NCBI RefSeq assembly: GCF_964188315.1
Contig: NC_135670.1
Coordinates: 17,794,001 to 17,858,000 of the forward strand
Length of the DNA: 64,000 bases
Direction: 5' to 3'
DNA from: Podarcis muralis
Lineage: Eukaryota
Translations under genes and position numbers: made by a program
Part shown: positions 7,117 through 59,841 of the stretch, in pieces
Numbering within the stretch: the first letter of the stretch is position 1
Layout of the letters: each line of letters starts with the position of its first letter
Notes under the pieces: model-generated
Database searches by the model: none
Told to the model about the DNA's origin: nothing
Seen by the model: the letters and a program-made list of their open reading frames with translations, nothing else

Positions 7117-10100
7117 ATGGCGTTTGGTGGAATTCTGTGGATGCTGATATTATATATGACCATTTTCATTCACTCCTTGCTGTTTGCACGGGGAGTTTAT
7201 TATCATTTTACAAGGACCCACATTCCTCCAGGAATCACCCACGGCAGAAAATTATCTTTTTTATCTTTTGCATTGGGATATCTCCTTGAACTGGTAAGTT
7301 TGTTTTACATATATCACAATCAAGGGGTTGGGGTGATACTCCCCCCCCCTTCATTAAAAAAGGCTGCAGTGTTTGGGATTTTTTAGTTTAGAGAAAAGGC
7401 AAGCTGCAGGTGACGTGATAGCAGTCTATAAAATTTGTGCATGTCACGGAGAAAATGTTTCTCCCTGTCTCATGACACTAGAACTAAATGTTGGAAGATT
7501 CAGGAAAGCTATAAGAGGGGACTTGTTCGCACTGGACATTTTCAAACTATGGAAGTCTTTTTCACAGGGGGCAGTGATGGCCAGTGCTTTTTTCTAAAAA
7601 AAAATATGTTTAGAAAACTCTCATTTTGACTCAAGAAAATCACCATGTAATAGTTCAAATCAGGAAAAATAAATACAGTAAATGGAGAAAAGTACAAAGA
7701 TTCACAAAATGTTTAGGGGTATGCGTACCCCTGTGTCCCCCGCCAGAAAAAAGCACTGTGAATCCAAAGGTAAATTAAGGAAAGAGAGGGCTATGGATGG
7801 CTGCTAGCCTGCATGGCTATGCTCTGCCTCTGCAGCTCAAGGCAGCAATGCTTCTGTACACCAGATAGGGGAAGGGGACAGGGCTCCTGTGCTCACATCC
7901 TGCTTGAAGGTTTCCCACAGGCAGTGGCGTAGCGTGGGGGGTGCGGGGGGGGGGGCGGCCGCACCGGCCGCAACATCTGGGGTTAGGGCAAATCCACGGG
8001 TTAGGGGGCGCAAATCCACAGGTTAGGGGGCGCAAATCCACGGGTTAGGGGGCGCAAATTACTTGCCTTGCCCCGGGTGCTGACAACCCACGCTACGCCA
8101 CTGCCCACAGGCACTGTGAGGAATCATCTGCTGGACTAGATGGGCCACTGGCCGGGACCAACAGGCTCTTTTTACATTCTTATGGAGAGAGGGAGAGAGA
8201 GAGAGAGTTTCATGCCAGCCCAAACTCCAAGAAGTGAGTGGTGAATGAAAGGATATACTGTACAGTGGTACCTTGGTTTGCATACATATTGGTTTGCATA
8301 TATTTTGGATTACAAACACGTCAAACCTGGAAGTGCGTGTCCCGGTTTGCAACCTTTTTTTTGGATTACAGCCCATTTTTTTGGATTATGAAATTTTTTT
8401 TTGAGGAGGCCCCTGTGGCGAAAGCGCGCCTTGAATTACAACCTGTTTTGGTTTACAAACGGACCTCCAGAATGGATTTGGTTGTAAAGCAAGGTACCAC
8501 TGTACAATTTAGTTGCCCCACATATGAGAGGTTCGTTCCACAGGCAGTGCATACCGTATTTTTTGCACCATAACACTCACTTTTTTCCTCCTAAAAAGTA
8601 AGGGGAAATGTCTGTGTGTGTTATGGAGGGAATGCCCACGGGTGGCATGCATACGGATTTTCCTCCTCTAAAAACTACGTGCATGTTATGGTCGGGTGTG
8701 TGTTATAGAGCGAAAAATACGGTATATGCAAAATATGTTTTTTATATGCAAAACTATCTAAGCCTGATCATAAATGCTGAATGTTTTGGTTTAAACAGGG
8801 CGTGTTTCTGGAAAAACTGGGCATTTGCCATAGATATGTCATCTGCAGGGCTGCGTACGATGCCATGCCAACAAAGAAGGACTTAAACCTGATCAGAAAG
8901 GACCTGGTTTTTGATGGGGTGCCAGTGAGGGTATACTGGCCCAAGACACCAGCTGCTGGGAACAGGAGAGGAATCATCTATCTTCATGGAGGTGCTGGAC
9001 TCCTTGGAAGCATCCGTAAGTTCTTTGAAAGAGTCTCAAAATGGTTCACTGTATTGTTTGAGGAGAATTTGGGCTGGCACATTAGTATAAAAGTCCTGAA
9101 GTGTTTGCTATGGCGGGCTTCGGGTGGTTTGTACTGCCCCTGTAGGCAGTTTAAGTTTAATGCAAGATGGGACCATGAGGCAAGAAAACGGGGCTGAGGC
9201 CCCCGTCACAAAGGCGTCCAGTTCTGTAGTAATTCTGTGAACGGCCCTGAAATTCTGTGAACCGCCCTGAGACCTCCGGGTATAGGGCGGTAGATAAATT
9301 CAATAAATAAGTAGAAATATATAAATTAAAATTAAAATTCCTAGTGTCACAGTCAATGAAAATAATTATTATTTATTATTTATTATTTATTATTTATTAT
9401 TTATTATTTGTACCCCGCCCATCTGGCTGGGTTTCCCCAGCCACTCTGGGCGGCTTCCATAAAAACCAAAAATACACTAAAATATCATACATTAAAAACT
9501 TCCCTGAACAGGGCTGCCTTAAGATGTCTTCTGAATGTCAGGTAGTTGTTTATCGCTTTGACATCTGATGGGAGGGCGTTCCACAGGGCGGGCGCCACTA
9601 CCGAGAAGGCCCTCTGCCTGGTTCCCTGTAGCTTTGCTTCTCGAAATGAGGGAACCGCCAGAAGGCCCTCGGTGCTGGACCTCAGCGTCCGGGCAGAACG
9701 ATGGGGGTGGAGATGCTCCTTCAGGTATACTGGGCTGAAAAATCCTAAAAATGCCAAAGAAGGTGTTTCTGCTTCATGTACCAAGGGACTTCTATGAAAG
9801 GGTTTTAAGAGGTGATCAGAAATAACTGGAAAGAAGCCAAGAAATGTGGGTGGAAGTTTGTTTTTGTTTTTTACCCACTGACACTGCTTGATCTCTGCTA
9901 CAGATCAGGAGAGGGTAAAACCACAGAATGCCCCATTTACAAAGAGTTCAGTGCAACTGAGTTTTTCCCAGAGGAACTTCATTAAAAGTTGTTGTTTTCT
10001 ACAGTCAAGTGGCATACAGTATACAATTTATGACATAAAAATAAATAAATAAGCTCATCTAAATTAGCTATATCTCTTGATTTCAACAGATTTACTTTTA

Positions 10101-10363
10101 GGAGGACTAAGCCTGGTGTCAACTCACAATGATTTCAGTGTGAATGAGCAGGGGAAATTGTAATGGAGGGGTTGTGGGGCTTGTGTTTTCTTCCAGGAGC
10201 CTGTGAAAACGTCTGCTGTTCCATTGTCCACGAAAGTGATTCAGTGGTTGTGAATGTTGGGTAAGTGGTTTCACTCTCTTGCTATCCGAAACAATGCGTA
10301 ATGCCTCTCAGCTTCCAACCTTTCCTGAGCCCAGAGGAATGATGTTGCTGCTGCTGCTGCTGG

Positions 10364-10404
<41 letters not shown>

Positions 10405-13400
10405 TCTTTTTATGATGCCGATCTGACTGGGTTGCCCCAGCCACTCTGCGTGGCACCCAATGAAAAAAGTAGTAAAACACAATACACCAAACACTAAAAG
10501 CTTCCCTGGACAGGGCTGTCTTCAGATGTCTTTTAAAAATCACATAGATGTTTAACTCCTTGAAATCTGCTGGGGGGGGGGCATTCCACAGGGCAGGTGC
10601 AACTACCAAAAAGGCCCTCTGCCTGGTTCCCTGTTACCTCACCTTTCACAATGAGGGAACCACAAGAAGACCCTCGGAGCTGGGTTGGACGATGGGGATG
10701 GAAATGCTCCTTCAGGTATACAGGGTCATAGCTGTTTAGGGCTTTAAAGGTTAGCACCAACATTTTGAATTGTGCTCGGAAACCTACTGGAATCTGTGGT
10801 AAGAATTCACTTCAACACCACCTTGTTCGTTAACCAGGTGAGAAATCACATTTAAATGATGATAGCCTGGAAATAAAATTCCCAATATTAAGAGATCTAA
10901 AGGAAAATAGTGCCCTCTTTCTAAACCCACCCCCACGTAGACATTCGAAAGATTGCCAAATCAACTATGCTGGATTCTGCCTGGCTTTGTTACAAATAAG
11001 TCTTGACCTGATCATTGCAAATGGGGCATTCCCTGGGGACAGAGAAGGCGAGTATACATACATAAATACAAATGGAGCCAGCACAGTAGACTACTGTCTC
11101 ACTAACAGAGAGGCCTTCGAATCAATTAAAAAATTCACCATAGATAATAGGACTGAAAGTGACTACTTACCTCTAATCATCTCCACTACTGGCCAAAATT
11201 CAATTCAGCGCTCTCACATAGAACATGAGGATATAGATAAAGCAAATGATCCAGCATTGCGTAGGAAAAAATGGACACCTGAGATAGCAATTGCAGTTGA
11301 GAATAGATTGAATTCACAAACTGCAATTAAGTTAAGATCAATTATAATAAACAATTTATCAATAGACTCCTCCCTGACAGCTTACGAAAATCTCATTGAG
11401 TCCTTGCAGGATGTGGTCTTGGTTAACATAAACTCAGCCGGCAAGCCACGCACTGCTAAAGGGTGTGGTTGGTTTGACCAAGAGTGCCGCACAAAGAAGG
11501 AAGCCTTAAGGAACGCCTATTTGGCCTATAGAAACACTGGATTAAACTATTTACCTCAATCTTATTTCAAAATCAAAAAAGAGTACAAAGCCCTTTTGGC
11601 CTCAAAAAAAAGGCAGTCCGAACAAAATTCCTGGTCCTTACTATTGAATGCCTCACTAAACAATGAAACTAAACTCTTTTGGCAACTGGTCTCCGACTCA
11701 ATGAAAAATAGTTCCTCAGCCCCCAGCTGTGTCATTCCAGCTCAGGTTTGGGAGAACCACTTCAGAAATATATTTATGGAAAATCCAAACCTCCCTTCCA
11801 GCTTACAGGAGGATGACAGGGTAGAATTGTCACTGCTCCCTAATTGGAGGCCAGTTACTGTGGAGGAAGTCCATATATTAATTGGGAATCTGAAGAGTGG
11901 AAAGGCCCCGGGAAAAGACTTTATCCCAGCAGAGTTGATTACATCAAACCAGCACTGGTGGGCTCCGCTTCTGGCAGCACTCTTTACGGTAGTAAATAAC
12001 TCGGGTAAGGTACCATATAGCTGGAAACACGCTATAGTAGTTCCAATCTTTAAGAGAGGCCACCCAAATGTACCATCCAATTATAGGCCTATTAGCCTGC
12101 TCTCAATAATTGGGAAGCTGTATGCCCGTTTCCTCAGTAGCAAACTGACAACTTTTCTAAATGAACATAATATACTGTCTGAAGCCCAGGCAGCTTTCCG
12201 TGAGAACCATTCAACAACAGACCACTGTCTAATGCTGTCCTTCTGTAGCACCCTGCTTGTGGTTAACGCTTAGCTGGAATGAAATATTCAACGCAGCAAT
12301 AGAGAAATTAAAATAATAATTTATTTGTCAGACAAATAAATGAGAGGCACAGTGGTATATGGTTACCAAGCTCTGGCCTGGCCTCCTGCCATTATGGCCA
12401 GCACTTATATTCCCTCAGCCCAGCTCCCTTGCTCCTCCTTTGGCTGCCTCTGTCCAATCAGCCTGGTTGAAATTTCTATTGGCTGATTGCCAGAACCAAT
12501 CATAAGAGATACACCCATTTCCTATTACCTTTTATGGGAGACAGAGAGCCATATTTCCTTCTATTTATAATTGGCAAACAAGTAGCCATTAACCTCTACA
12601 AGGCACCTTAATTACCAGATCACCTTTGCCCCTCTTGCCCTATTCCCTGCAAAACAGATGGCTAATGGTTCTAATTTTATCTGAACAGAGATCTTGGGTT
12701 CACCAGCTATGAAAGATCGCCTTCTTTGGAGCCATATGTCAGGAGTGCTCTGATGGTGTTTCCTGCCTGGCAGGGGGCTGGGCTCAATGGCCCTTGTGGT
12801 CTATTCCAACTCTAGGATTCTATGATTCTATGAAATAAGAATCTAACATAAGAATCTAAATTTCTAAATCCTTTGCATAATTACATTTAAGCCAATATAT
12901 TTCATACATTAACATATATAGCTTTTTAGAAGGAAAGGAACTTAGTAAAAGCTAAGCTAAATTCTCTCTAAATTCTCTAAAGCTTCAAAGCAGTTTCAGA
13001 GAGCTGCTTTTCCTAGTTTAGCTGCTGTTCCTATTTGTGACTCAAGTCTCATATGGGAGGCATAATAATTCTTACTATTTACCAGCTTAATTGTGTTTTT
13101 GCAACTTGATTATTCTGTAATTTGTAAGGTCAGTGACCTCTCTTCCCAGCCTTTTTATGACCGCAATAAACCAAAGGGGCCCTCTGCCTAAGAGGATGAA
13201 CATCTGCCAAAATCTTAGCCAGCCTAGTTCCTGCCTGGCATGAAACATTTGTGAATTTAAGCCCATTTTTAGAATTATAGGAACCTGATCAAAATATAAG
13301 CCTTGATTATAATGCAGGCTCAGATGCCTCACTTCCTAGCTGAGAAGTATACCAGACCTCTACAGGGTAAACTCTTTGTGGCCTTTATGGATCTGAAATC

Positions 13401-16400
13401 AGCATTTGACACCATCCCCAGATCCCAGCTATGGTCCAAATTGAGTCTGATTTTGCAGGACAAACGACTTCTCTTTCTTATAAAAGCCCTATACAATGGA
13501 ACCAAACTGCAGGTCCGATGCGGTCGACAGGGACAGCTATCGGACAGCATCGAGATGACTAGGGGGGTGAGACAGGGTTGTATTTTGGCCCCCACACTGT
13601 TTTGTCTATTCGTAAATGACCTAGAAGAGAACTTAATGGACCCAGATGGACACACTCCAAAAATAGGAATGAGAAGGACCCCTTTGTTGTTGTATGCTGA
13701 TGACGCGGCCATCATCTCGCGTTCCAGACCGGGTTTGAATTATCTGTTGAGGAAATTTTCTGATTACTGTTCTGGAAATGGTTTATCCATTAATTATGAA
13801 AAATCTAAAATTTTAGTCTTCGAAAGAAGATTCTCCCAGTCTAAATAGGTGCTGGATGGCCATAACCCTGAACAGGTAAAATACTTCAGTTACCTAGGGC
13901 TCACATTCCATCATACAGGATCTTGGAAGCACCATTGGCAAACCTCCTTTCAAAAGGCGGAGATTACAAAGCTAGCCATACATAGATTCTTCTACACAAA
14001 GGGTGGCAAATATGTTCCAGCAGCCTTAAGGGTTTTCAACGCAAAGCCCGTTTCCCAACTCCTGTATGCAGCAAATGTCTGGCATAATGGGGACCTGCCA
14101 AAGCTAGATGGCTTTCAGGCAAAATTTATACGAGCTCTGCTGCAGGTACCTAACTGCGTCCCCAACTCCGTACTTCTGTTGGAAGCTGGTGAATGCCCAA
14201 TTTCAGCTAGAGCGTGGTGGGCTGCCCTAAAACATTGGCTCAGGATTTCAGTGTTTAATTTAGGGAAGGGTCTGTACCAACATTTGACCAATGAGGAATT
14301 TGTCAGCAAATGGCAGAAAACCATGGCTAAAAAAGCCACCTCTATTGGTCTGTCTCCCCCCCAACTGTATTACCTGGGTTATGAAGGCGCCCAAAAGGTT
14401 TTAAAGCAAAGATTATGGGACAATGCACACAGCGACTTGTGATCTCGATCACACACAGTCTGTAGCCCGCTGGCAGCAGGAGTTCAATATGGGTATGTCT
14501 TTGAGTTAACATCTTACATCAAAAACCTGACAGTACCTAACTATCGAAGGCTTTTCACTAAAGCCAGACTAAATGTCTTCCCCTCTGCAGTGCTAGATGG
14601 TAGGTTGAGAGGAGTTCCCTACCAGGACAGACTTTGCTCGTGTGCTCAAGACATCGATTCCATAAATCATATTTTGTTGCATTGTACGAAGTATGAGCAG
14701 GCCAGGGCTGAACTGATACTACCTTTGCTGGTACCTTTCCCGGGAAAATCAGAGGCTCACTATGTCAGGTTCCTACTGGAAGACTGGACAAAAGCTAGAA
14801 CGTTGGCAGTGGCAAAGTTTCTATCGGTGGTTGCAAGAACAAATGAGCCCTATATTCTAAACAAAATGATTAATTAACCTGGAGGTAGGCTGTATGAACT
14901 GTGTATTGATTTGTAATGTTTTGTTGGGTCTCTGGACCGTAATAAAGATTGTTGTTGTTGTTTAAATAAACCACAGAAAACTATTTTCAAGTCCAGCATC
15001 TTGGTTAGGCACCTGGTGTTTTTATTTATCTATTGCAATAGGACAGAGCTCAGTTCAATGTGCCCATTAAGAAGGTCTGTCTGAGGCACATCAGATCATT
15101 AGGAAGAACTTCCTGACAGTAAGAGCTGTTTCACAGTGGAATTTGCTGCCAAGGAGTGTGGTGGAGTCTCCTTCTTTGGAGGTCTTTAAGCAGAGGCTTG
15201 ACAACCATATGTCAGGAGTGCTCTGATGGTGTTTCCTGCTTGGCAGGGGGTTGGACTCGATGGCCCTTGTGGTCTATTCCAACTCTATGATTCTATGAGA
15301 TCAAAAGCTTATAGAGTAACACAGCACACAAAGAGTCATAAAACTCTTTGTATGGTGTTTTCCTACTATCAACCCCCCCCCCCCATAACTTAGGGCCTGT
15401 GTTCTTTAGGGGCACAGTTTCCCCATTCAGTTTCCTCCACACCTCCCCCGCCCCCGTTCACCAGAAACAGTACTTCAGTCTTATTGGGATTCAACTTCAA
15501 TCCATTAACTGTCATTCAGCCAGATAAAGTTTTAAATATAATGATTTTTCCAGCAATTAGAATAGGTGTTCATTTTTTAAAATATAGATTTTTTTTATGT
15601 TTGGGGCGCATCTCCCTTTTACTTTGAACATAGTAAGAACTCTGCTGGATCCGACCATCGTGTTCTCAGTGGCGGTAGCACATCCTGCTTGTGACTAGTA
15701 CCCACTGGTATGAATGATTGCTAGGAGGCCTGCCAACCAGATCAGGAGAGCTGCAGTAGAACCTGCTAATGGACAAGGGAAAGCAAGAAGGAAGGAGCTG
15801 GAGGGTAGAGAAAGGTGTGTTGTAATGAAACAGCTATTTGTCCAAAGGGAGAGTTTAAATTTGCTTTCCATTTTTGCCTCAGGTCCCACCCACAGCTGCC
15901 ATGTGGCCCCCATAGGGTTGCACAGAAAGAAACGTGGCCCTCGGTGTGAAAAAGATTCCCAACACTTGCAGTATGCCATTACAGAAAATGGTCTTTTTTC
16001 CCCATGAAGTGTATGGTGTTGAAGGTGGGTGATATCTTGTTTTTTCTTTAGATTTCGTTTAGCTCCTGAGCATCCCTATCCAGTCCCTGTACTGGACAGT
16101 TTAACTGCTGCAATATATTTTCTGAAGAATGCAGAGGAATACGGAGTGGACCCCAACTGCATTGCCATTGCTGGGGAGAGTAGCGGAGGCACATTTGCTG
16201 CAGCTATTTGTCAAGAACTGGTGACCAGAGAGGGCCTCCCAAGACTGCGAGCTCAGGTCCTCATCAACCCATTCTTACAACCAGGGGACTTTGATTTGCC
16301 ATCCTATCAGCAAAACCAATCAGTTCCCCCCTTGTTCAGGAAACAAATTATCAAATTTGGTTTGACATATCTCACTGGGAAGACAATGAATGTAGATGGA

Positions 16401-16826
16401 ATTCTGAAAGCCGCCCATGTCCCTCCTGATTTGAGGGAGAAATGCCGAAAATGGATCAGTGCTGATAACATTCCAGAAGAATTTAAAGCTAGGGGCTATG
16501 TTCCTGTAGAACCTGCTCCATTTTCAAAAGAACTTTATGAACAAGTTAAAAGAGGTACTGAGACAATGTTTTGCCCCCTTGTAGCAGAGGATGACATAAT
16601 CCGCCAGCTCCCAGAGACTTTCATTCTAACCTGTGAATATGATGTTCTACGGGATGATGGGCTGTTGTACAAGAAGCGGCTAGAGGACCACGGTGTGCCA
16701 GTGACATGGTATCATGTTCAAGATGGATTCCACGGAATAATGGCCATGGCTGGTTGGCGGATCCTTGAATTTCCGAGCACACAGAAATGTTTGCAGAGTG
16801 TAATACAGTTCTTAAAAGATTTATAG
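7117..16826 (+). CDS. AADACL4: AADACL4-like esterase paralog A, join(7117..7293,8799..9015,10197..10260,16052..16826), 410 aa
   Basis: GT-AG junctions with consistent phases 0/1/2, total 1233 nt. Features: N-terminal hydrophobic anchor, HGGAG oxyanion motif, FRLAPEH, GESSGG nucleophile, CEYDVLRDDG, DGFHG. Motifs RLRAQVLI, PSYQQNQ and KWISADNIPEEFKARGY match the AADACL3/4 family from memory. Family assignment is solid; one-to-one orthology is not established. Confidence 0.9.
7922..8103. mobile_element. hAT-type MITE with 8-bp TSD
   Basis: TIRs CAGTGGCGTAGCGTGGG/CCCACGCTACGCCACTG and TSD CCCACAGG; empty site in paralog B at about 23385. Confidence 0.85.
8263..8502. mobile_element. Tigger/pogo-type MITE (paralogous copy at 23532-23771)
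   Basis: TA TSD; TIRs CAGTGGTACCTTG/CAAGGTACCACTG. Confidence 0.8.
8554..8722. mobile_element. Tc1/mariner-superfamily (pogo-like) MITE
   Basis: TIRs CCGTATTTTT..ATAACAC/GTGTTAT..AAAAATACGG and TA TSD; clean empty site in paralog B at 23821. Confidence 0.8.
9360..9740 (-). mobile_element. Short L2 3'-end copy, one of many (others at about 1-215, 10403-10790, 31135-31645, 41870-42450, 53350-53560)
   Basis: Reverse complement of the 3' end of the 4164-6720 L2, with a (TAA)n/(TAAA)n tail; absent from paralog B intron 2. Confidence 0.75.
10858..14960 (+). mobile_element. Non-LTR retrotransposon, RTE-X-like (EN-RT-CCHC), 5'-truncated, interrupted by a solo LTR
   Basis: One reading frame: EN (NGAFPGD..STVDY), RT (NYRPISLL, FVAFMDLKSAFD, GVRQGCILAP, LLYADD) and C-terminal RLCSC...HILLHC. 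AATAAA plus (TTG)n tail; 7-bp TSD TTTAAAT (10851-10857/14961-14967); empty site in paralog B at about 25200. Clade assignment is from motif memory. Confidence 0.85.
12244..13331 (-). mobile_element. Solo LTR inside the RT ORF, containing a CR1 3' fragment (about 12716-12832)
   Basis: TG...CA termini and 4-bp TSD CTTC (12240-12243/13332-13335); removing it restores MLSFLAEKY in frame. CCAAT boxes, a TATA-like motif and AATAAA lie in order on the minus strand. Confidence 0.85.
15099..15297 (+). mobile_element. CR1 3' fragment
   Basis: (ATTCTATG)n tail and TSD AGATCA; absent in paralog B. Confidence 0.85.
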
Positions 16827-17128
16827 AAATGAAAGACCTTCTGTGTCTTCCAATGGCAGCCTTCCCTTTCTGTGGGAACAATCCCCCTTTCCTATTGTCC
16901 CAGTCCTAAAGTAAGAAGAAAAGGTCAGGTCCACAATTCTACCCAGTCAGATTTATTAAAATCACCATGACATCTGTGAGTACATAAGCAGCATTCATTG
17001 GCATACAACCTGTCATAATGCAAACATTCCTAGAGCCTCCTCCATGAATTGGTCTGATCCTCTTTTAAAACTACTCAACCAGATCACCAAGTTAGCTAAT
17101 TCCATTGATTAGCTGTCGCTCCATAATA

Positions 17129-22805: not shown

Positions 22806-25800
22806 ATGGCGTTTGGTGGAAGTCTGTGGATGCTGATATTATATATGATCATTTTCATTCACTCCTTGCTGTTTGCACGGGGAGTTTATTATCATTTTAC
22901 AAGGACCCACATTCCTCCAGGAATCACCCATGGCAGAAAATTATATATTTTTTCTTTTGGATTGGGATATCTCCTTGAACTGGTAAGTTTGTTTTACATA
23001 TATCACAATCAAGGGGTTGGGGTGATACTCCCCCCCCCATTAAAAAAGGCTGCAGTGTTTGGGATTTTTTAGTTTAGAGAAAAGGCAAGCTGCAGGTGAC
23101 GTGATAGCAGTCTATAAAATTTGTGCATGTCATGGAGAAAATGTTTCTCCCTGTCTCATGACACTAGAACTAAATGTTGGAAGATTCAGGAAAGCTATAA
23201 GAGGGGACTTGTTCGCACTGGACATTTTCAAACTCAAGAAAATCACCATGTAATAGAGGGCTATGGATGGCTGCTAGCCTGCATGGCTATGCTCTGCCTC
23301 TGCAGCTCAAGGCAGCAATGCTTCTGTACACCAGATAGGGGAAGGGGACAGGGCTCCTGTGCTCACATCCTGCTTGAAGGTTTCCCACAGGCACTGTGAG
23401 GAATCATCTGCTGGACTAGATGGGCCATTGGCCGGGACCAAGTGGCTCTTTTTACATTCTTATGGAGAGAGGGAGAGAGAGTTTCATGCCAGCCCAAACT
23501 CCAAGAAGTGAGTGGTGAATGAAAGGATATACAGTGGTACCTTGGTTTGCATACATATTGGTTTGCATATATTTTGGATTACAAACACGTCAAACCTGGA
23601 AGTGCATGTCCCGGTTTGCAACCTTTTTTTGGATTACAACCCATTTTTTTGGATTATGAAAATTTTTTGGGGGGAAGGCCCCTGTGGCGAAAGCGCGCCT
23701 TGGGTTACAACCTGTTTTGGTTTACAAACGGACCTCCGGAATGGATTTGGTTGTAAAGCAAGGTACCACTGTACAATTTAGTTGCCCCACATATGAGAGG
23801 TTCGTTCCACAGGCAGTGCATATATGCAAAATATGTTTTTTATATGCAAAACTAACGCTGATCATAAATGCTGAATGTTTTGGTTTAAAAAGGGCGTGTT
23901 TCTGGAAAAACTGGGCATTTGCCATAGATATGTCATCTGCAGGGCTGCGTACGATGCCATGCCAGCAAAGAAGGACTTAAACTTGATCAGAAAGGACCTG
24001 GTTTTTGATGGGGTGCCAGTGAGGGTGTACTGGCCCAAGACACCAGCTGCTGGGAACAGGAGAGGAATCATCTATCTTCATGGAGGCGCTGGACTCCTTG
24101 GAAGCATCCGTAAGTTCTTTGAAAGAGTCTCAAAATGGTTCACTATATTGTTTGAGGAGAATTTGGGCTGGCACATTAGTCTAAAAGTCCTGAAGTGTTT
24201 GCTATGGAGGGCTTCGGGTGGTTTGTACTGCCCCTGTAGGCAGTTTAAGTTTAATGCAAGATGGGACCATGAGGCAAGAAAACGGGTCTGAGGCCCACTG
24301 TTACAAAGGCGTCCAGTTCTGTAGTAATTCTGTGAACAGCCCTGAAATTCTGTGAACCGCCCTGAGACCTCCGGGTATAGGGCGGTAGATAAATTCAATA
24401 AATAAGTAGAAATATATGAATTAAAATTAAGATTCCTAGTGTCACAGTCAATGAAAAATCCTAAAAATGTCAAAGAAGGTGTTTCTGCTTCATGTACCAA
24501 GGGACTTTTAGGAAAGGCCTTTAAGAGGTGATCAGAAATAACAGGAAAGAAGGCAAGAAATGTGGGTAGAAGTTTGTTTTTGTTTTTTACCCACTGACAC
24601 TGCTTGATCTCTGCTACAGATCAGGAGAGGGTAAAACCACAGAATGCCCCATTTACAAAGAGTTCAGTGCAACTGAGTTTTTCCCAGAGGAACTTCATTA
24701 AAAGTTGTTTTCTACAATCAAGTGGCATACAGTATACAATTTATGACATAAAAATAAATAAATAAGCTCATCTACATTAGCTATATCTCTTGATTTCAAC
24801 AGATTTACTTTTAGGAAGACTAAGCCTGGTGTCAACTCACAATGATTTCAGTGTGAATGAGCAGGGGAAATTGTAATGGAGGGCTTGTGGGGCTTGTGTT
24901 TTCTTCCAGGAGCCTGTGAAAACGTCTGCTGTTCCATTGTCCACGAAAGTGATTCGGTGGTTGTGAATGTTGGGTAAGTGGTTTCACGCTTTTGGTATCC
25001 GAAACAATGCGTAATGCCTCTCAGCTTCCAACCTTTCCTGAGCCCAGAGGAATGATGATGATGATGATAATAATAATAATAATAATAATTCTTTTTATGA
25101 TGCCCATCTGACTGGGTTGCCATGCACACAATGCATGGGATCTGTGGTAAGAATTCACTTCAACATCACCTTGTTCGTTACCCAGGTGAGAAACCACCTT
25201 TTAAATAAACCACAGAAAACTATTTTCAAGTCCAGCATCTTGGTTAGGCACCTGGTGTTTTTATTTATATATTGCAATAGGACAGAGCTCAATTCAATGT
25301 TGGGGACGCGGGTGGCGCTGTGGGTTAAACCACAGAGCCTAGGACTTGCCGATCAGAAGGTCGGCGGTTTGAATTCCCGCAACAGGGTGAGCTCCCGTTG
25401 CTCGGTCCCTGCTCCTGCCAACCTAGCAGTTTGAAAGCACTCCAAAGTGCAAGTAGATAAATAGGTACCGCTCCAGCGGGAAGGTAAACGACATTTCCGT
25501 GCACTGCTCTGGTTCGCCAGAAGTGGCTTAGTCATGCTGGCCACATGACCCGGAAACTGTATGCTGGCTCCCTCGGCCAATAAAGCGAGATGAGCGCCGC
25601 AACCCCAGAGTCGGTCACGACTGGACCTAATAGTCAGGGGTCCCTTTACCTTTACCTTAACAATTCAATGTGCCCGTTAAGAAGATCTGTCCGAGGCACA
25701 TCAGATCAAAAGCTTATATCAGGGGTCAGCAACGTGCAGCCCATGAGCCAGATGCGGCCCATGAAGACCATTTTACCGGCCCATGGGCTGCCCCAGAACC

Positions 25801-32885: not shown

Positions 32886-32989
32886 CAAGCTTGACCAGCT
32901 GTCGACAAAGAAAACTGAAAACCTGGATGCTGCCTCTTTTTATAAATAAATGGAATAAATAAATGAATGAAAAGTGGAGTTGCTAGGGG

Positions 32990-38839: not shown

Positions 38840-38986
38840 NNNNNNNNNNNNNNNNNNNNNNNNNNNNNNNNNNNNNNNNNNNNNNNNNNNNNNNNNNNNN
38901 NNNNNNNNNNNNNNNNNNNNNNNNNNNNNNNNNNNNNNNNNNNNNNNNNNNNNNNNNNNNNNNNNNNNNNNNNNNNNNNNNNNNNN
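38840..38986. other. Assembly gap (147 N)
   Basis: Run of n characters. Confidence 1.
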
Positions 38987-42800: not shown

Positions 42801-45033
42801 CGCCACCTTGGGCACCCCCAGGCCCAGCACTTCCCGAAAAAGTGCAACCTGCATGCCCCATGGAGCTCACTATGGCGTTGGAGCCAATGTAGTTTTCTTA
42901 GGACTAGTGTTATGTGGTCCTGGCTGCTTCTCCCATTCACCAGTCTAGCTGCTACATTTTGGATTAGTTGTGCTTTCCAAGTCACCTTCAAAAGTAGCCC
43001 CACATCCAGCACATTGCAATAGTCAAAGCCAGAGATGACCAGAGCACGTACCACCCTGGTGAGACAATGTGCAGGCAGGTAGGGTCTCAGCCAGCCTACT
43101 AGATGGAGCTGGTAGACAGCTTCCCTGGACACAAACCTGACCTGTGCCCCCATGGACACCTGTGAGTCCAGAATGACTCCTAGGCTGTGCACCTGGTCCT
43201 TTAGGGGCACAGTTGCCCGACTCAGGACCACACCCACCCAGCCCGTCCCCCAGAAACAGTATTTCTGTCTTGTTGGGACTCAAGTTCAGTGGGTGAAATG
43301 CCATCCAGCTTTATAAAGTTGTAAACATAGTGATTTTGCCAACATTTAGAATGGGTGTTCATTTTTGTATTTAGATTTCTAGCTCAAATCCCTTTGACTT
43401 TGAACATAGTAAGAAATCTGCTGGATCAGGCCAAAGGGGACTCATCTAGTCCAGCACCATGTTCTCACAGTGGCAAACCAGATGCCCGAATGGGAAACGC
43501 ACAAGCAGGACCTGAGCAGAAGAGCTCTCTCCCCAGGTCCAGTTTCCAGCAACTGGTATTCAGAAGCATTACTGCCTCTGATAGTGGCACATCATCCTTG
43601 TGACTAGTATCCATTGCTATTAGCAATTGCTAGTAGTCTTGCCAACCTGATCAGGTGAGCTGTGGATGGAGGAAGGTAGATACCAAGTAGTGGGATTATA
43701 ACTTCACTGATGCACAGGATGCTGGACAGTGCTACAGGAACATGATAATGGACTCATTTACAGTTGTGGTTTTTAACACTCAAAACGAGTTTTAAACGGG
43801 TTAGGATATCCAGTTGAAGAACTTAAACAATGTGCCATTGAAACATGACACCAGGGGGCAGTGCAGAGTCATTCCTGTCAAATAATTTGGTATATGTTGT
43901 AGAAAAGGATGCGAAGGAAAAACCAAATGCCTTTACATTTTAGAATGACATTAAAATATCTTTCTAAGAACACTTAAAAAGTGAGTGTAGATCCAGATAT
44001 GGACAGGGGAAAACAAGAAGGAAGCAGCTGGAGGGGAGAGAATGGTGTGTGGCTATGTGTAGCAACAAGTGTAGATTTCCAAAGGGAAAGTTTGCATTTG
44101 CTTTTTATTTTTGTCTCAGGCCCCCATAGGGTTGCACAGAAAGGAATGTGGCCCTAGGGGTGAAAAAGATTCCCAACACTTGCAATATGTAATGCAGGCA
44201 AACGGTCCTTTTCTGTAAAGTGTATGATGTTGATATCTTGTTTTCTTTTTAGATTTCGTTTAGCTCCTGAGCATCTCTATCCGGTCCCTGTCCTGGACTG
44301 TTTAACTGCTACAATACACTTTCTGAAGAATGCAGAGGAATACGGAGTGGACCCCAACTGCATTGCCATTGCTGGGGACAGTAGTGGAGGCACATTTGCT
44401 GCAGCTATTTGTCAAGAACTGGTGACCAGAGAGGACCTCCCAAGACTGCGAGCTCTGGTCCTGATCTACCCATTTCTACAAGCAGTGGACTTCGATTTGC
44501 CATCCTATCAGCAAAACCAATCAGTTCCTCCCTTGTTCAGGAAACGAGTTGTTAAATTTGGTTCGACATATATCACTGGGAAGGAGATAAATGTGGACCC
44601 AGTTATAAAAGGTGCCCACATCCCTCCTGATTTGAGGGAGAAATACCGAAAATGGATCAGTGCTGATAACATTCCAGAAGAATTTAAGGCCAGGGGCTAT
44701 GTCCCTAATGCTCCTGCTCCATTTTCAGAAGAAATTTATGAACAACATAAAATGGGTCTTGAGGCAATGTTTGCCCCCCTTCTAGCAGAGGATGACATAA
44801 TCCGCCAGCTCCCAGAGACTTTCCTTCTAACCTGTGAATATGATGTTCTCCGGGATGATGGGCTGTTGTACAAGAAGCGGCTAGAGGACAACGGTGTGCC
44901 CGTGACACATCATCATCTTCCAGATGCAGGCCATGCAGGACTTAGCATTTTTGGTTGGGGGCCATTTGAATTTCCGAGCTCAAAGAAATGTTTGCAGCAT
45001 ATGGTACAGTTCTTAAAAGTTTTATCGAAATAA
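39882..45033 (+). CDS. AADACL4: AADACL4-like esterase paralog C, join(39882..40058,40821..41037,41717..41780,44253..45033), 412 aa
   Basis: Four exons with GT-AG junctions and an open frame; GDSSGG, EYDVLRDDG, DAGH. Confidence 0.9.
42239..42418. mobile_element. hAT-type MITE, same family as 7922-8103 in opposite orientation
   Basis: TIRs as above and TSD AGCACCAA; nested in an L2 3' fragment. Confidence 0.85.
42900..43315 (-). mobile_element. L2 RT fragment (paralogous, longer copy at 57313-57990)
   Basis: VPLKDQVHSLGVILDSQ...YQLHLV...LIQNVAARLV. Confidence 0.8.
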
Positions 45034-45724: not shown

Positions 45725-46866
45725 CAGTGGTGCCTCGCAAGACGAAATTAATTCGTTCCGCAAGTCTCTTCGTCTTGCGGTTTTTTCGTCTTGCGATGCA
45801 CGGTTTCCCATAGGAATGCATTGAAAATCAATTAATGTGTTCCTAGGGAAACCGCCTTCAGACCAGGTCCGGGGACAGTCTGTCCCCCGACCTCTTCTGA
45901 AGGCTGGGGGGGGGACAAGGTGTTCCCGCCCCCCCGCCCCGCTTCGGAGCAGCGTTCCGAAGCGGGGCGGCTGGGGCAGGTGTTCCCGCCCCCCCGCCCC
46001 GCTTCGGAGCAGCGTTCCGAAGCGGGGCGGCTGGGGCAGGTGTTCCCGCCCCCCCGCCCCGCTTCGGAGCAGCGTTCCGAAGCGGGGCGGCTGGGGCAGG
46101 TGTTCCCGCCCCCCGCCCCGCTTCGGAGCAGCGCTCGGAAGCGGGGTGGCTGGGGCAGGTGTTCCCGCCCCCCCGCCCCGCTTCGGAGCAGCGTTCCGAA
46201 GCGGGGCGGCTGGGGCAGGTGTTCCCGCCCCCCCGCCCCGCTTCGGGGCAGCGTTCCGAAGCGGGGCGGCTGGGGCAGGTGTTCCCGCCCCCCCGCCCCG
46301 CTTCGGAGCAGCGTTCCGAAGCGGGGCGGCTGGGGCAGGTGTTCCCTCCCCCCCGCCCGGCTTCGGAGCACCGGGAGAAGCGATCTCCCCGCAGCCCCTT
46401 GCTTCAAAAGAGGTCCGGGGGCAGCGGGGAAGAAGCGCTGCGCTTCCCGCTGCCCCCGGACCTCTTTTGAAGCAAGGGGCTGTGGGGAGATCGCTTTTCC
46501 CCGCAAACCCTTGCTTCAAAAGAGGTCCGGGGGCAGCGCGAAGCGCTTCCCGCTGTCCCCGGACCTCTTTTGAAGCAAGGGGCGGTGGGGAGAAGCGATC
46601 TCCCCGCAGCCCCTTGCTTCAAAAGAGGTCCGGGGGCAGCGGGAAGCGCTTCCCGCTGTCCCCGGACCTGGGGCTGCGGGGAGAAGATCGCTTCTCCCCG
46701 CCGCCCCTTGCTTCAAAAGAGAAGACCCGCTGTCCCCTGGGCAAGCTTCGTTTTGCGAAGCAAGCCCATAGGGAAATTCGTCTTGCGAGGCAACTCGAAA
46801 ACGAAAAAACCTTTCGTTTTGCGAGTTTTTCGTCTCGCGAGGCGTTCGTCTTGCGGGGTACCACTG
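45725..46866. mobile_element. Tigger/pogo-type non-autonomous DNA transposon carrying GC-rich minisatellites
   Basis: TIRs CAGTGGTGCCTCGCAAGACGAA/TTCGTCTTGCGGGGTACCACTG; TA TSD. Confidence 0.85.
45919..46370. repeat. 60-bp GC-rich minisatellite, about 7.5 units, each with an internal palindrome
   Basis: Unit GGTGTTCCCGCCCCCCCGCCCCGCTTCGGAGCAGCGTTCCGAAGCGGGGCGGCTGGGGCA. Confidence 0.95.
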
Positions 46867-53343: not shown

Positions 53344-53384
<41 letters not shown>

Positions 53385-54734: not shown

Positions 54735-55096
54735 ATGGCATTTGGTGGAACTCTGTGGATGCTGATATTATATACATTTTCATTCATTCATTCCTTGCTG
54801 TTTGCATGGGGAGTCTATTATCATTTTAAAAGGACCCACATTCCTCCAGGAATCAGCCAGGGCATAAAATTACGAGTTTTCAGTTTTGCAATGGAATATA
54901 CACTTGGACTGGTAAGTTTGTTTTGAATATATCACAATCGAAGGGATGGAGTGACCCACCCTCCTTATCAATAAGGCTACAATGTTCAGGATTTTTTAGT
55001 TCAGAGAAAAGGCAAGCAACTGGCGACAGGATGGAGGTCTGTGAAATTATGGATGACGTGGAGTCTCTTTCACAGGGGGCAGTGATGGCTACCAAG

Positions 55097-55146
<50 letters not shown>

Positions 55147-58100
55147 TTATACTCTGCCCATCTGGCTGGGCTTCCCCAGCCACTCTGGGCGGCTTCCCCA
55201 AAAAATATTAAAATACTGTAATACATCAAACAAAGTTGAATAGCTTCCAAAGAGGATTAGATAAATTCAGTGAGGAGGAGGTTTTGGGTGGCTGCTAGTC
55301 TCCATGCCTATACCCTGCTTCTAAAGCTACAGGCACCAATGCTTCTGAATACCTTTTGCTGGGAGAGGGTTCCTGTGCACAGATCCTGCTTGAAGGTTTC
55401 CCACAGGTACTGTGAGAACAGGCTGCTGGACTAGATGGGCCATTGGCCAGGCCCAACAGGCTCTTTTTACATTCTTATGTACATATATGTTATGCTGAAT
55501 GTTTTGATTTAAACAGGGATTGTTTCTGGAAAAACTGGGCATTTGCCATAGATACATCATCTGGAGGATTGCGTTCAATGCCATACTAACAGGAAAGGAC
55601 TCAAAGTTGATCAGTAAGGACCTGGTTTTTGATGGGGTGCCAGTGAGGGTGTACTGGTCCAAGACACCAGCTGCTGGGAACAGGAGAGGAATCATCTATC
55701 TTCATGGAGGCGCTGGACTCACTGGAAGCTTCCGTAAGTTCTTTGAAAGAGTCTCACAAAGGTTTACCAAGTGGTTTGTGGAGAATTTGGGGTGGTACTT
55801 TAATGTAAAGTTCCCAAAATGTTTGCTACATAGAGGTGGGGTGCTTCATACTGCTGCTGTTGACAGTTTAAGATTAATGTAGGATGTCTTTGTGTGGTAA
55901 GAAAATGGGGCTGAGAGGCCCCCTGTTACAAAGGTGACCAGTTCTGTATCACACTCAATGAAATATCCTTAAAATGTCAAAGAAGATGTATCTGCTTCAT
56001 GCCGCAAAGGACTTCTATGAAATGGCTTCCAGAGATTATCAGAAATAACTGGAAAGAAGCCCAGAAATGTGGGTGGAAGTTTTGTTTTGTTTTTTACCCA
56101 TTGACACTGCTTGTTCTGTTACTGATCAGCAGAGAGTAAAACCCACAGAATGGTTTTTAGCTAGTGATTTACAAAGAGTTCAACTGAGTTTTTCCCAACT
56201 GAGCTCTATTAAAAGTTGTTGTTGTTTTCGCTAATCAAGTGGCATCTACATTTTATGACATAAAGGTAAAGGTAAAGGTACCCCTGCCCGTACGGGCCAG
56301 TCTTGACAGACTCTGGGGTTGTGCGCCCATCTCACTCAAGAGGCCAGGGGCCAGCGCTGTCCGGAGACACTTCCGGGTCACGTGGCCAGCGTGAAATCGC
56401 TGCTCTGGCAAGCCAGAGCCGCACACGGAAACGCTGTTTACCTTCCCGCTAGAAAGCGGTCCCTATTTATCTACTTGCACCCGGAGGTGCTTTCGAACTG
56501 CTAGGTTGGCAGGCGCTGGGACCGAGCAACGGGAGCGCACCCCGCTGCGGGGATTTGAACCGCCGACCTTTCGATCGGCAAGCCCTAGGTGCTGAGGCTT
56601 TTACCCACAGCGCCACCCGCGTCCCTGACATAAAAATAAATAAGCAGATCTCTTGATTTCAACAGATTTACTTTTAGTAGGACTGACACAGACTTCAGCT
56701 CACAATGATATCAGTGTTCTTGACCAGGAAAAATTGTAATGGAGGTTGGGGGGGGGGGGCTTTTGCTTTCTTCCAGGAGCCTCTGAAAAGATCTGCCGTT
56801 TCATGGCCAACCAAAGTGATTCAGTGGTTGTGAGTGTTGGGTAAGTGGTTTCACTCTCTTGGTAGCCGTGTAATGCCCCTCAGCTTCTAACCTTTCCTAA
56901 GACCTGATCCCAGAGGAATTGTTCTATTCTATTTTATTTTATGTTATTTTATTTATTTGTACCCCACCCAGCCGCTCTGGGTGGCTTCCAACATATATAA
57001 AAATGTAATAAAACATTGCACATTAAAAAGCTTTCCTTAACAGGTCTGCCTTCAAATCTCTTCTAAAGGTTACATAGTTACTCATCTCCTTGACTTCTGA
57101 CATACCCAGCAACAATTCTCCGATGAAAATAGGGACCTCCTACCATAGCATCCAATGTTTCTCCGATGAAAATACTGATGTCTTACCATACTCTTCAACA
57201 TTTATCGGATTAAAATAGGGACATCATAAGGAAAAGTGGGCCATTCCAGGATCAAATCAGAAACTGGGACAGCTTCTGTAAATCCGGGGCTGTCCCTAGA
57301 AAATAGACTCACTTGGAGGGTCTGAGGAGGGTGTTCCATGGGGCGGACACCACTAACCAAGCCATCTGCTTGGTTCCCTGTAGCTTTACATCTAGCAGTA
57401 AGGGAACATCCAGAAGGCCCTCAAAGCTGGATCTCTTATGTCCTGGCGGGATGATGGGGGTGGAGATGCTCCTTCAGGTATACAGAGCTGAAGCCATTTA
57501 GGGCTTTAAAGGTCAGCACCAACACTTTGATTTGTACTCTGAAATGTACTGGGAGCCAATGTAGCTCTTTTAGGACCATAGTTATATGCTCCCGACGGCT
57601 GCTCCAAGTCACCAGTCTAGCTGCTACATTCTGGATTAGTTGTACTTTCCAAGTCACCTTCAAAAGTAGCCCCACATCCAGCGCATTGCAATAGCCAAAG
57701 CCAGAGATGACCAGAGCATGTACCACCCTGTTGAGACAATGTGCAGGCAGGTAGGGTCTCAGCCAGCCTACTAGATGGAGCTGGTAGACAGCTTCCCTGG
57801 ACACAGACCTGACCTGTGCCCCCATGGACACCTGTGAGTCCAGAATGACTCCTAGGCTGTGCACCTGGTCCTTTAGGGGCACAGTTGCCCGACTCAGGAC
57901 CACACCCACCCAGCCCGTCCCCCAGAAACAGTACTTCTGTCTTGTTGGGACTCAAGTTCAATCGGTGAAATGTCATCCAGCCTTATAAAGTTGTAAACAT
58001 AGTGATTTTGCCAACATTTAGAATGGGTGTTCATTTTTGTATTTAGATTTCTAGCTCAAATCCCTTTGACTTTGAACATAGTAAGAAATCTGCTGGATCA

Positions 58101-59841
58101 GGCCAAAGGGGACTCATCTAGTCCAGCACCATGTTCTCATAGTGGCAAACCAGATGCCCGAATGGGAAACGCACAAGCAGGACCTGAGCAGAAGAGCTCT
58201 CTCCCCAGGTCCAGTTTCCAGCAACTGGTATTCAGAAGCATTACTGCCTCTCATAGCGGCACATCATCCTTGTGACTAGTATCCATTGCTATTAGCAATT
58301 GCTAGTAGTCTTGCCAACCTGATCAGGTGAGCTGTGGATGGAGGACAGGTAGATACCTAGTAGTGGGATTATAACTTCACTGATGCACAGGATGCTACCG
58401 GAACCTGCTAACGGACAGAGGAAAACAAGAATAGACCCTCCAGGTGCCCCTATTTGCAGTGACTGTCCCAGATTTTCAGAAGCCATCCTGGTTTCTGATT
58501 TGATCCCAGAATGTCCCACTTTTCTTCAGGACATCCCTATTTTCATTGAGAAATGTTGGGAGTGTTTGGAATTATGCAACCCCTGAGCCAAAGAGATAAG
58601 AGATACGGCATCTGAAGGCAGCCCTGTATAGGGAAGTGTTTTAATGTTTAATGCTTTATTACGTTGTTATATATGTTAGAAGCTGCCCGGAGTGGCGGGG
58701 GCAACCCAGTCAGATGGGTGGGGTATAACTAATCTATTATCATTATGGAATAGAATGCCCCTATTTTCATGGGAGAAATGAGGGGGGGGGGTATGCAAGA
58801 AGGAAGGAGCTGGAGGGTAGAGAAAGGTGTGTTGTAATGAAACCACCTATTCATCCAAAGGGAAAGTTTGCATTTGCTTTCCATTTTTGCCTCAGGTCCA
58901 CCTGTAGCTGGCATGTGGCCCCCACAAGGTTGCATGGAAAGGAATGTGGCCCCAGGGGTGAAAAAGATTCTCAGCACTTGCAGTATGCCATTACAGAAAA
59001 TGGTCTTTTTCCATGAAGTGTATGGTGTTGATTGTGGGCGATATCTTGTTATCTCTTTAGATTTCGTTTAGCTCCTGAGCATCCCTATCCCGTCCCTGTA
59101 CTGGACAGTTTAACTGCTACAATACACTTTCTGAAGAATGCAGAGGAATACGGAGTGGACCCCAACTGCATTGCCATTGTTGGGGACAGTAGTGGAGGCA
59201 CTTTTGCTGCAGCTATTTGTCAAGAACTGGTGACCAGAGAGGACCTCCCAAGACTGCGAGCTCAGGTCCTGATCTACCCATTTCTACAATCAGGGGACTT
59301 TGATTTGCCATCCTATCAGCAAAACCAATCAGTTCCTCTCTTGTACAGAAAACGAGCTATCAAACTTGGTTTGACACATCTCACTGGGAAGGAGATCAAT
59401 GTGGACCTAGTTATAAAAGGTGCCCATATCCCTACTGATATGAGGGAGAAGTACAAAAAATGGGTCAGTGCTGATAACATTCCAGAAGAATTTAAGGCCA
59501 GGGGCTATGTCCCTAATGCTCCTGCCCCATTTTCAGAAGAACTTTATGAACAAGTTAAAAGAGCTGGTGAGGCAATGTTTTGCCCCCTTGTAGTAGAGGA
59601 TGACATAATCCGCCAGCTCCCGGAGACTTTCCTTCTAACTTGCGAGTATGATATTCTCCGGGATGATGGGCTGTTGTACAAGAAGCGGTTATTGGACAAC
59701 GGTGTGCCAGTGACACATCATCATCTTCCAGATGGATTCCATGCAACACTTAGCTTTTTTGGTTTATGGCCACTTGAATTTCCGAGCTCAAGGAAATGTA
59801 TGGAGCATGTGGTACAGTTCTTAAAAAGTTTATATAAATGA
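54735..59841 (+). CDS. AADACL4: AADACL4-like esterase paralog D, join(54735..54911,55517..55733,56777..56840,59061..59841), 412 aa
   Basis: Four exons with GT-AG junctions and an open frame; GDSSGG, EYDILRDDG, DGFH. Confidence 0.9.
56265..56625 (-). mobile_element. Sauria SINE, full length
   Basis: Head and tail as above; TSD TGACATAAA. Confidence 0.9.

Follow-up and report, generated by a model that had tools for sequence, protein, structure and literature searches.

The 64,000-nucleotide stretch of the Podarcis muralis genome analysed here (the window; NC_135670.1, positions 17,794,001 to 17,858,000, numbered below from 1) carries a tandem array of AADAC-family genes whose products are nearly identical over part of their length and radically different in short patches, and the question that this locus raises is how both conditions arose within the same genes. 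The initial annotation, made from the sequence alone, read the array as a birth-and-death family with an invariant catalytic core and patches under diversifying selection. Gene birth and death and the excess of amino-acid replacement in the patches both stood up to analysis, but a core kept alike by purifying selection alone and the idea that the patches are hypervariable at present did not. Instead, the coding sequences are mosaics, in which the patches follow orthology while the 'invariant core' groups by genus.

The window contains four intact AADACL4-like genes (A-D), all on the forward strand, each with four exons of 177, 217, 64 and 775-781 nt and with GT-AG introns throughout. Gene A (exons 7117-7293, 8799-9015, 10197-10260 and 16052-16826) encodes 410 residues, and B (22806-22982, 23893-24109, 24910-24973 and 27496-28276), C (39882-40058, 40821-41037, 41717-41780 and 44253-45033) and D (54735-54911, 55517-55733, 56777-56840 and 59061-59841) encode 412 each, D being the terminal gene of the array. 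A TPR gene flanks the array on one side and G-patch and YjeF_N genes on the other; downstream of D, a G-patch gene and a YjeF_N gene are also found in P. raffonei and L. agilis. The products of C and D are 100% identical to the P. muralis RefSeq proteins P0133 and P0121, respectively, both named 'arylacetamide deacetylase-like 4', and were analysed through these database entries, while A and B were searched exon by exon. RefSeq P0129 is identical to exons 2-4 of B, its annotation lacking exon 1, and orthologs of B are present as P0003 in P. raffonei (92.7%) and P0005 in L. agilis. Together with 10 orthologous CDS the set spans four lacertid species, and none of the 14 CDS is disrupted or departs from canonical splice sites. 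A search of sequencing runs with exon 4 of C recovered no run recorded as RNA; 14 contig sets guessed to be possible RNA contain 17-65% of the C exon-4 words, and these were not taken as evidence of expression.

Family membership is clear. Pfam Abhydrolase_3 (PF07859) matches exon 4 of A-D with E-values of 3e-34 to 4e-33 (115-119 bits, cut-off 25), and among more than 1000 homologs the named ones in the best 120 are nearly all AADACL4 or AADACL3, as annotated automatically at source. The array is one sub-array of a lacertid-specific, AADACL4-type expansion, where 'AADACL4-like' is the name given by automatic RefSeq annotation. The catalytic serine, aspartate and histidine were said to be kept in all four paralogs, and so they are: HGG at 122-124, Ser196 within GESSG or GDSSG, Asp350 within EYD[VI]LRDDG, and His380. 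In gene A the three codons lie at 16179-16181, 16641-16643 and 16731-16733 of the forward strand. The ordered series H122-G-G, G194-[DE]-S196-S-G198, D350 and H380 is present in 4/4 copies and 10/10 orthologs; 70 homologs show no variation at G194, G198, D350 and H380, and at least 90% of them have S196. Like members of the vertebrate AADAC family (AADACL4/AADACL3, AADAC and NCEH1), the lizard proteins are about 410 residues long with an N-terminal hydrophobic helix (residues 2-32), and they share the HGG oxyanion motif, the GxSxG nucleophile, the Asp and His and the Abhydrolase_3 domain. Unlike that family, B, C and D carry other residues in place of the DGFHG motif that members otherwise share beside the catalytic His, a loss that could reflect altered or reduced activity rather than a new specificity.

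An AlphaFold2 model of C (pLDDT 90.3) has an alpha/beta core and a predicted helix at residues 2-32 across the hydrophobic stretch. Its top Foldseek matches are HSL-family esterases (E ~1e-21), with target TM-scores of 0.7-0.82 to family IV esterases, and a profile search of PDB sequences likewise returned HSL-family esterases at 1e-41 to 1e-45; no vertebrate AADAC-family structure was among the 50 Foldseek matches listed. Fold and catalytic motifs are common to the lizard proteins and the solved family IV esterases EstD11, EST2, Est8 and EstDL136, at identities of only 19-27%, and the lizard proteins differ in having an additional membrane anchor and a longer cap-2 insertion (approximately residues 262-335). 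A-D are predicted to be N-terminally membrane-anchored serine esterases of the HSL (Abhydrolase_3) family.

All four sets of patch strings quoted in the initial annotation are present as written in A-D, and in gene C the patches occupy 40005-40058, 40851-40889, 44545-44571 and 44920-44952. The conserved stretch, at 40920-41024 in the same gene, proved to be 35 residues long (93-127) and not 37, although it does contain a single replacement (P to S in D), and any two copies differ at 1-3 nt per 105 nt. In HSL-family enzymes the cap has two parts, one formed by N-terminal helices and the other by a segment inserted between beta6 and beta7 (PMC7905190). By AlphaFold2 secondary structure and alignment to EstD11, the patches map to the helices of the N-terminal cap, to the cap-2 helix and to the post-His loop, the cap parts having been identified from their position and from an alignment that pairs residues 186-265 with EstD11 133-211; patches 1-3 fall in the two parts of the family IV cap that covers the pocket (PMC7905190). 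Cap helices 1 and 2 are variable throughout the family, from turtle to anole. At its 3' end, exon 4 is distinctive in each copy.

On the whole alignment, orthogroups B, C and D are recovered within the lacertid clade. Along the CDS, however, quartet counts alternate between blocks that support orthology (up to 229:4) and concerted blocks in which paralogs of one genome group together (26:2, 31:6 and 28:11), with the control quartet pattern low throughout. Sites of the two kinds are strongly clustered (23 runs vs 58 expected, p < 1e-4), and a four-gamete, PHI-like test also indicates recombination (p = 0.0005). Trees of the converted and non-converted partitions conflict: AU tests reject the orthology tree for the former (delta lnL 61, p 0.005) and the genus tree for the latter (delta lnL 458), it being important to note that the partitions were defined from the same data on which they were then tested, and that the runs test and the intronic block described below are independent of that choice. 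Within the converted partition, synonymous divergence between B, C and D of the same genome (dS 0.10-0.16) is lower than that between orthologs of different genera (0.16-0.22).

Homogenization is not confined to coding sequence. An 844-bp block of intron 3 in gene C (42880-43723, forward strand) pairs with 57552-58396 in gene D and is a non-coding conversion tract with an old LINE fragment inside it; C and D are 96.4% identical here, compared with 94.4% between the P. muralis and P. raffonei orthologs of C. The two genes group by species in this block in 4/4 species, with 11-27 concerted quartets against 0-9 for orthology. Of the changes derived recently in P. muralis B, C and D, approximately half agree with a paralog in the same genome. 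A site-level count gave 38 concerted against 26 control sites, a non-significant difference (p 0.17), under a tie rule that assigned mixed sites to the control class; the case for conversion is therefore built on quartet totals, runs test, AU tests and intron block. Since the core groups by genus and not by orthogroup, interlocus gene conversion is indicated, and it has included non-coding DNA. Purifying selection as the only cause of the near-identity of the core is at odds with a paralog dS below the ortholog dS, with rejection of the orthology tree, and with the concordant intron block; the 'conserved core' is conserved in part because it has been copied between genes.

The patches have a different history. 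Pairwise (NG86) dN/dS between the four copies is 1.7-2.5 in the 51 patch codons and 0.43-0.71 elsewhere, the patch values exceeding the 1 at or below which the initial annotation would have held its reading refuted, and a single-ratio codon model (M0) gives an omega of 1.02 for the non-converted partition vs 0.47 for the converted one. In the non-converted partition M2a improves greatly on M1a (LRT 34.8, p 3e-8; 32.8 when A is left out) in our own implementation of the codon models, with relative branch lengths fixed from M0 and calibration on only 6 null replicates, which yielded LRTs of 0-2.2. The positively selected class comprises 11-16% of sites at omega 3.4-4.4, an M2a result that residual recombination or multi-nucleotide changes may have inflated, and the sites with posterior above 0.9 (47, 48, 50, 56, 75, 78, 252, 257, 258 and 384) all lie in the four patches. 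Omega is thus above 1 in segments located in the cap. It is also unevenly distributed in time: the post-duplication stems have an omega of 2.18, significantly above 1 (LRT 8.25, p 0.004), vs 0.81 within orthogroups. From this contrast it follows that the patches of B, C and D differ by old changes; most of these are kept in the Lacerta and Zootoca orthologs, and the pattern is one of post-duplication divergence, not of hypervariability at present. The within-orthogroup value of ~0.8, which refers to the non-converted half, also means that weakly constrained cap helices may contribute some of the signal.

We consider it likely that two processes have acted on different segments of these genes, conversion of the scaffold and faster-than-neutral divergence of the patches after duplication. 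Conversion repeatedly copies the catalytic scaffold among paralogs (codons ~101-120, 161-220 and 261-380, including the HGG strand, the nucleophile elbow and the Asp region) as well as at least the terminal 850 bp of intron 3 in C and D, and the copied parts remain almost the same within one genome. Four segments escape homogenization: the pair of N-terminal cap helices at residues 43-65 and 71-80, the end of exon 2 with exon 3, the cap-2 helix at 249-261, and the post-His loop and helix with the C-terminus. These paralog-specific segments would have undergone rapid amino-acid change soon after the B/C/D duplications and then been largely kept in orthologs. Such segments can themselves be moved by conversion, as in gene A, a recent copy of B whose His loop, C-terminus and, in part, cap-2 helix are foreign, which gives a new combination of segments.

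Other explanations can be weighed against the same data. If the patches had merely drifted under relaxed constraint, with no adaptive divergence of the cap helices and His loop, one would expect the variability of cap helices 1 and 2 that is seen across the vertebrate family, the within-orthogroup omega of ~0.8, and the 64-70% of sites that M1a places at omega = 1 in the non-converted partition; one would not expect a class of sites at omega 3.4-4.4, an LRT so far beyond the null simulations, a stem omega significantly above 1, or intact reading frames and splice sites in all 14 CDS across four species, and we judge such a history unlikely. About equally unlikely overall is the model of the initial annotation, in which birth and death, ongoing diversifying selection on the pocket and purifying selection on the core operate with no conversion. 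Relics and lineage-specific copies, a patch omega above 1 and the recovery of orthogroups on the whole alignment all agree with it, but the grouping of core segments and the intronic block by species, the low paralog dS of the core and the patches that are largely conserved within orthogroups, where omega has dropped after the stems, do not, and for the core this model is already contradicted. Lastly, every patch difference might be an imported cassette from a divergent donor, with no substitution in place. This is true of A in two short tracts; the patches of B, C and D, however, are orthogroup-specific, recur in the orthologs from Podarcis, Lacerta and Zootoca, and have no counterpart in any other subclade of the family table, making it very improbable as a general account.

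Gene A deserves separate consideration. It is a young duplicate of B in the P. muralis lineage: the JC distance between the two in intron 2 is 0.027, and in P. raffonei the 10 kb preceding gene B contain no A-like exons. DNA identity between A and B falls only in two short tracts of exon 4 (~16375-16434 and ~16675-16854), and there the protein (His loop, C-terminus and some of the cap-2 helix) is 88-91% identical to members of subclade 2. The donor is a member of this second lacertid subclade, which is another subfamily. The string QDGFHGIMAMA in A, the most radical of the patches, is the ancestral family motif, imported by short conversion tracts. An assembly artefact was considered as the origin of gene A and dismissed, given that an earlier P. 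muralis annotation, made independently, already includes an A-type protein (P0022, 96.5%).

It is tempting to go further and to view the array as a cassette system, in which conversion maintains a shared scaffold and specificity modules (cap helix, His loop and C-terminus) are occasionally transplanted between sub-arrays, as in A, so that lacertids would gain esterases of new specificity, perhaps acting on the blends of waxy esters that skin or femoral glands secrete. We think this more ambitious scheme improbable, albeit worth stating. We do infer that the paralogs are active esterases that differ in acyl or alcohol specificity. Nothing in this analysis supports a skin, femoral-gland or dietary role, and the text and two supplements of a Lacerta agilis femoral-gland proteome paper contain no esterase, deacetylase or AADAC term.

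Interlocus gene conversion combined with divergent segments protected by selection is familiar from tandem families of the primate opsin, globin, RH and MHC type. The lizard array shares with these the sharp-bordered homogenized tracts, segments particular to each paralog whose omega exceeds 1, gene relics and copies confined to single lineages, and differs in that it encodes an enzyme, with the catalytic scaffold as the homogenized part and the cap as the protected part. It adds a clear case to an evolutionary pattern that is already known. The rodent Abp, Mup and Esp pheromone families (PMC3477143) are related as a birth-and-death system in which conversion plays little part. Our literature search returned no paper joining AADACL4 and lizards and nothing connecting AADACL3/4 with conversion or selection, and yielded no published account of the pattern in AADACL genes; judged by title, none of the AADACL4 papers among the matches listed concerns its function. 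AADACL4-type enzymes have expanded in squamates with no assigned function, and the array marks the targets of change as the two cap helices, the cap-2 helix and the His loop. The natural chimeras that it offers (A vs B, and the His-loop variants of B, C and D) make a patch-swap test of substrate range possible, and the locus is a compact case for partitioning site tests on tandem paralogs.

Gene turnover in the array, as initially proposed, is borne out by two relics, by the duplicate A, and by additional copies in other genera, since Zootoca has two B-like genes and Lacerta carries a copy in inverted orientation. Both relics are of exon 4 and were absent from the initial annotation. The first, psi1 (32992-33500, forward strand; detected by tblastn, open reading frames and Pfam), is a fragment covering residues ~162-330, with a frameshift near 33189, a still readable GDSSGG and an Abhydrolase_3 match at 32974-33282; it lacks exons 1-3 and the part containing Asp and His, and is also found in P. 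raffonei. The second, psi2 (37317-36300, reverse strand; tblastn), consists of old inverted pieces with 46-65% identity to the intact genes, and has counterparts on the minus strand in P. raffonei, P. lilfordi, L. agilis and Z. vivipara. The sole run of N in the window (38840-38986, 147 N) separates psi2 from the first exon of C; it is an intergenic assembly gap 896 bp upstream of the C start codon and touches no exon or open reading frame of the array. Its flanks are colinear and in the same orientation in P. raffonei, where 123 bp separate them, and in P. lilfordi, where the distance is 77 bp.

Four intact AADACL4-like esterase genes lie on the + strand of the window, which is from Podarcis muralis: A (7117-16826; 410 aa) and the 412-aa genes B (22806-28276), C (39882-45033) and D (54735-59841). 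They were found by tblastn with lacertid AADACL4 proteins, themselves retrieved by a search with exon 4 of C, followed by a splice-site search, and each consists of four exons of 177, 217, 64 and 775-781 nt with GT-AG introns throughout. As modelled, C and D match the RefSeq P. muralis proteins P0133 and P0121, respectively, at 100% identity, and exons 2-4 of B match P0129, which RefSeq annotates without exon 1; A has no exact protein match among the matches listed. The sequence observation made in the initial annotation was confirmed. All four copies are intact and keep Ser196 (in G-[DE]-S-S-G), Asp350 and His380, along with H122-G-G, and the variable strings at the end of exon 1, at the start of exon 2, after LFRK/LYRK and around the catalytic His (patches 1 to 4) are all present as quoted. 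The near-invariant 'core' spans 35 aa (residues 93-127), not 37, with one replacement and 1-3 nt differences between copies. The interpretation was supported in part: change has been faster than neutral in segments assigned to the cap, but the pattern as a whole is a conversion mosaic with old orthogroup-specific patches, rather than current hypervariability around a core that is merely constrained.

Ten orthologous coding sequences were built for comparison, using DNA of P. raffonei, P. lilfordi, Lacerta agilis and Zootoca vivipara; 8 of the 10 translate exactly to RefSeq proteins, and exon lengths are the same in all. In a protein tree A-D fall within a lacertid-specific clade of three orthogroups, one each for B, C and D, with A grouping in that of B, and a second lacertid subclade falls elsewhere. 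Quartets of two species and two paralogs, counted along the CDS, favour orthology at nt 1-300, 361-480, 661-780 and 1141-1242 and concerted evolution at nt 301-360, 481-660, 781-840 and 1021-1140, while the control pattern is low along the CDS. This arrangement is non-random (23 runs versus 58 expected, p < 1e-4), and a PHI-like four-gamete test gave p = 0.0005. Trees from the two partitions conflict, one recovering the orthogroups with 100% bootstrap and the other grouping by genus; in AU tests the orthology tree is rejected for the converted partition (p 0.005) and the genus tree for the other. Synonymous distances in the converted partition are lower among the P. muralis paralogs B, C and D (0.10-0.16) than between orthologs of different genera (0.16-0.22). 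Where these three genes carry recent derived changes, a paralog of the same genome shows the matching state in about half of the cases.

Conversion extends into non-coding DNA. Intron 3 of C and D ends in a shared 844-bp block (C, 42880-43723; D, 57552-58396), which includes an old LINE fragment. Within P. muralis this block is 96.4% identical between C and D, versus 94.4% between C of P. muralis and its P. raffonei ortholog. The block groups C with D by species in each of four lacertid species, with 11-27 concerted versus 0-9 orthology quartets, and this holds even between the two Podarcis species. The block shows, independently of any selection at the protein level, that conversion between C and D is ongoing in non-coding DNA. 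Several core residues, unlike the patches, are species-specific across paralogs (for example KTPAAGN in Podarcis versus KTSPAGN in Lacerta and Zootoca; N, K or H after YVP, by species). Given the quartets, runs, trees, synonymous distances and intron block, the supposedly invariant core, with its near-identical DNA, consists of conversion tracts.

The patches behave differently. Between copies, NG86 dN/dS is 1.7-2.5 in the 51 patch codons versus 0.43-0.71 elsewhere. Codon likelihoods were computed with our own GY94-type F3x4 implementation, each partition being analysed on its own tree. For the non-converted partition (214 codons; M0 omega 1.02), M2a improved on M1a with a likelihood-ratio statistic of 34.8 (p 3e-8), placing 16% of sites in a class with omega 3.4. 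Sites with posterior > 0.9 (47, 48, 50, 56, 75, 78, 252, 257, 258 and 384) all lie inside the set formed by the four patches. Removing A, which is chimeric, leaves a statistic of 32.8 (omega 4.4 for 11% of sites), and six null simulations under M1a gave 0-2.2. The converted partition (200 codons; M0 omega 0.47) also yielded a significant statistic (30.7; 6.5% of sites, omega 3.8); since no single tree is correct for that partition, we do not rely on it. These likelihood results, like the branch-model values below, come from our own code with relative branch lengths fixed, few null replicates and partitions picked from the same data, and multi-nucleotide changes may contribute.

Faster-than-neutral change is upheld, but as older divergence and not as current hypervariability: in a branch model omega is 2.18 on the three stems separating B, C and D versus 0.81 within orthogroups (stem omega > 1, likelihood-ratio statistic 8.25, p 0.004), and in a 14-sequence alignment the B, C and D patch sequences are largely common to Podarcis, Lacerta and Zootoca orthologs. 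These patch sequences are old paralog signatures.

Exon 4 of every copy matches the Pfam family Abhydrolase_3 with an E-value near 1e-34, and Foldseek and a PDB profile search place the proteins with family IV (HSL-type) esterases. The AlphaFold2 model of P0133, the protein of C (pLDDT 90.3), has an N-terminal helix (2-32), helices 43-65 and 71-80, an alpha/beta core, a helix (249-261) within the beta6-beta7 insertion and, following His380, a short helix (382-385). Two cap subdomains roof the EstD11 pocket: the first is made of N-terminal helices, and the second (residues 172-225) lies between beta6 and beta7 (PMC7905190). An alignment of C (residues 186-265) with EstD11 (133-211) puts patch 3 in cap subdomain 2; by position, patches 1 and 2 are assigned to the predicted N-terminal cap helices, so that patches 1-3 map to counterparts of the two-part EstD11 cap. 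There is accordingly real evidence for faster-than-neutral change in predicted pocket-covering segments. Patch 4 follows the catalytic His. At residues 370-392 of B, C and D (in C, 44902-44970), VTW.H..DGFHG around this His is replaced by VT[HY]HHL.D[AG].H[AS]; elsewhere the former motif has been conserved, in turtle and chicken as well as in the second lacertid subclade.

Gene A is a chimera. It matches B at 93-98% identity over a stretch that starts ahead of exon 1, runs to the end of exon 3 and takes in the introns (JC distance 0.027 in intron 2), and no A-like exons occur within 10 kb upstream of P. raffonei B. In exon 4, identity to B drops to 0.72-0.75 only at 16375-16434 and 16675-16854, with flanks at 92-100%. 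Over residues 331-410, A shares 88-91% identity with second-subclade proteins and carries VTWYHVQDGFHGIMAMAG, the motif that turtle, chicken and anole have also kept; what looked like a 'radical' patch at its His loop is thus an ancestral cassette that was imported. The derived state at this motif belongs to B, C and D, not to A. The UniProt protein P0022, which comes from an older assembly of P. muralis, is 96.5% identical to A, differing at 11 of 312 residues (noted at exon 4, 16052-16826); for D, annotation versions differ at 1 residue of 412. Gene A is perhaps unusually polymorphic, or its copy number may vary. Its intron 3 is 5.8 kb, versus 2.5 kb in B and C, because of LINE reverse-transcriptase ORFs (428, 181, 197 and 95 aa) at 10987-14877.

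The A-D genes themselves were already annotated and the evolutionary pattern is of a known kind, but as far as could be found a conversion mosaic is undescribed for the AADACL4 family: our literature search found no paper that treats AADACL4 in lizards or in connection with conversion or selection. The text and two supplements of an L. agilis femoral-gland proteome paper contain no esterase or AADAC term, which is weak negative evidence, and a search of sequencing runs for exon 4 of C returned no run on record as RNA.

The locus runs from a TPR gene through B, the relics, C and D to a G-patch gene and a YjeF_N gene; Lacerta has an inverted copy between C and D. Since 59842-63643 is colinear (94.5%) with P. 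raffonei DNA downstream of D, which carries the G-patch and then the YjeF_N gene, and a TPR-repeat gene lies upstream of B in Lacerta, the array is bounded on both sides. Between B and C lie two relics common to other lacertids, psi1 (32992-33500, + strand; exon 4 only, with a frameshift) and the older psi2 (37317-36300, - strand), also an exon-4 relic. The only run of N in the window (38840-38986) sits in the interval separating psi2 from C exon 1, 896 bp ahead of the C ATG, and touches no exon; its flanks keep their order and orientation in P. raffonei, where they lie 123 bp apart, and in P. lilfordi, where 77 bp separate them, and our conclusions on the array are independent of it. In L. 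agilis (L005), the interval between the TPR gene and B holds two traces of lost copies: an isolated relic resembling exon 1 (7745-7891; 84% to that of B) and, on the minus strand, a piece of exon 4 (6190-6372). Downstream of C by 0.9 kb lie a GC-rich 60-nt minisatellite (45918-46370; 7.6 copies, 96% matches) and a 103-nt repeat (46440-46669; 2.2 copies), and these produce long spurious ORFs on both strands.
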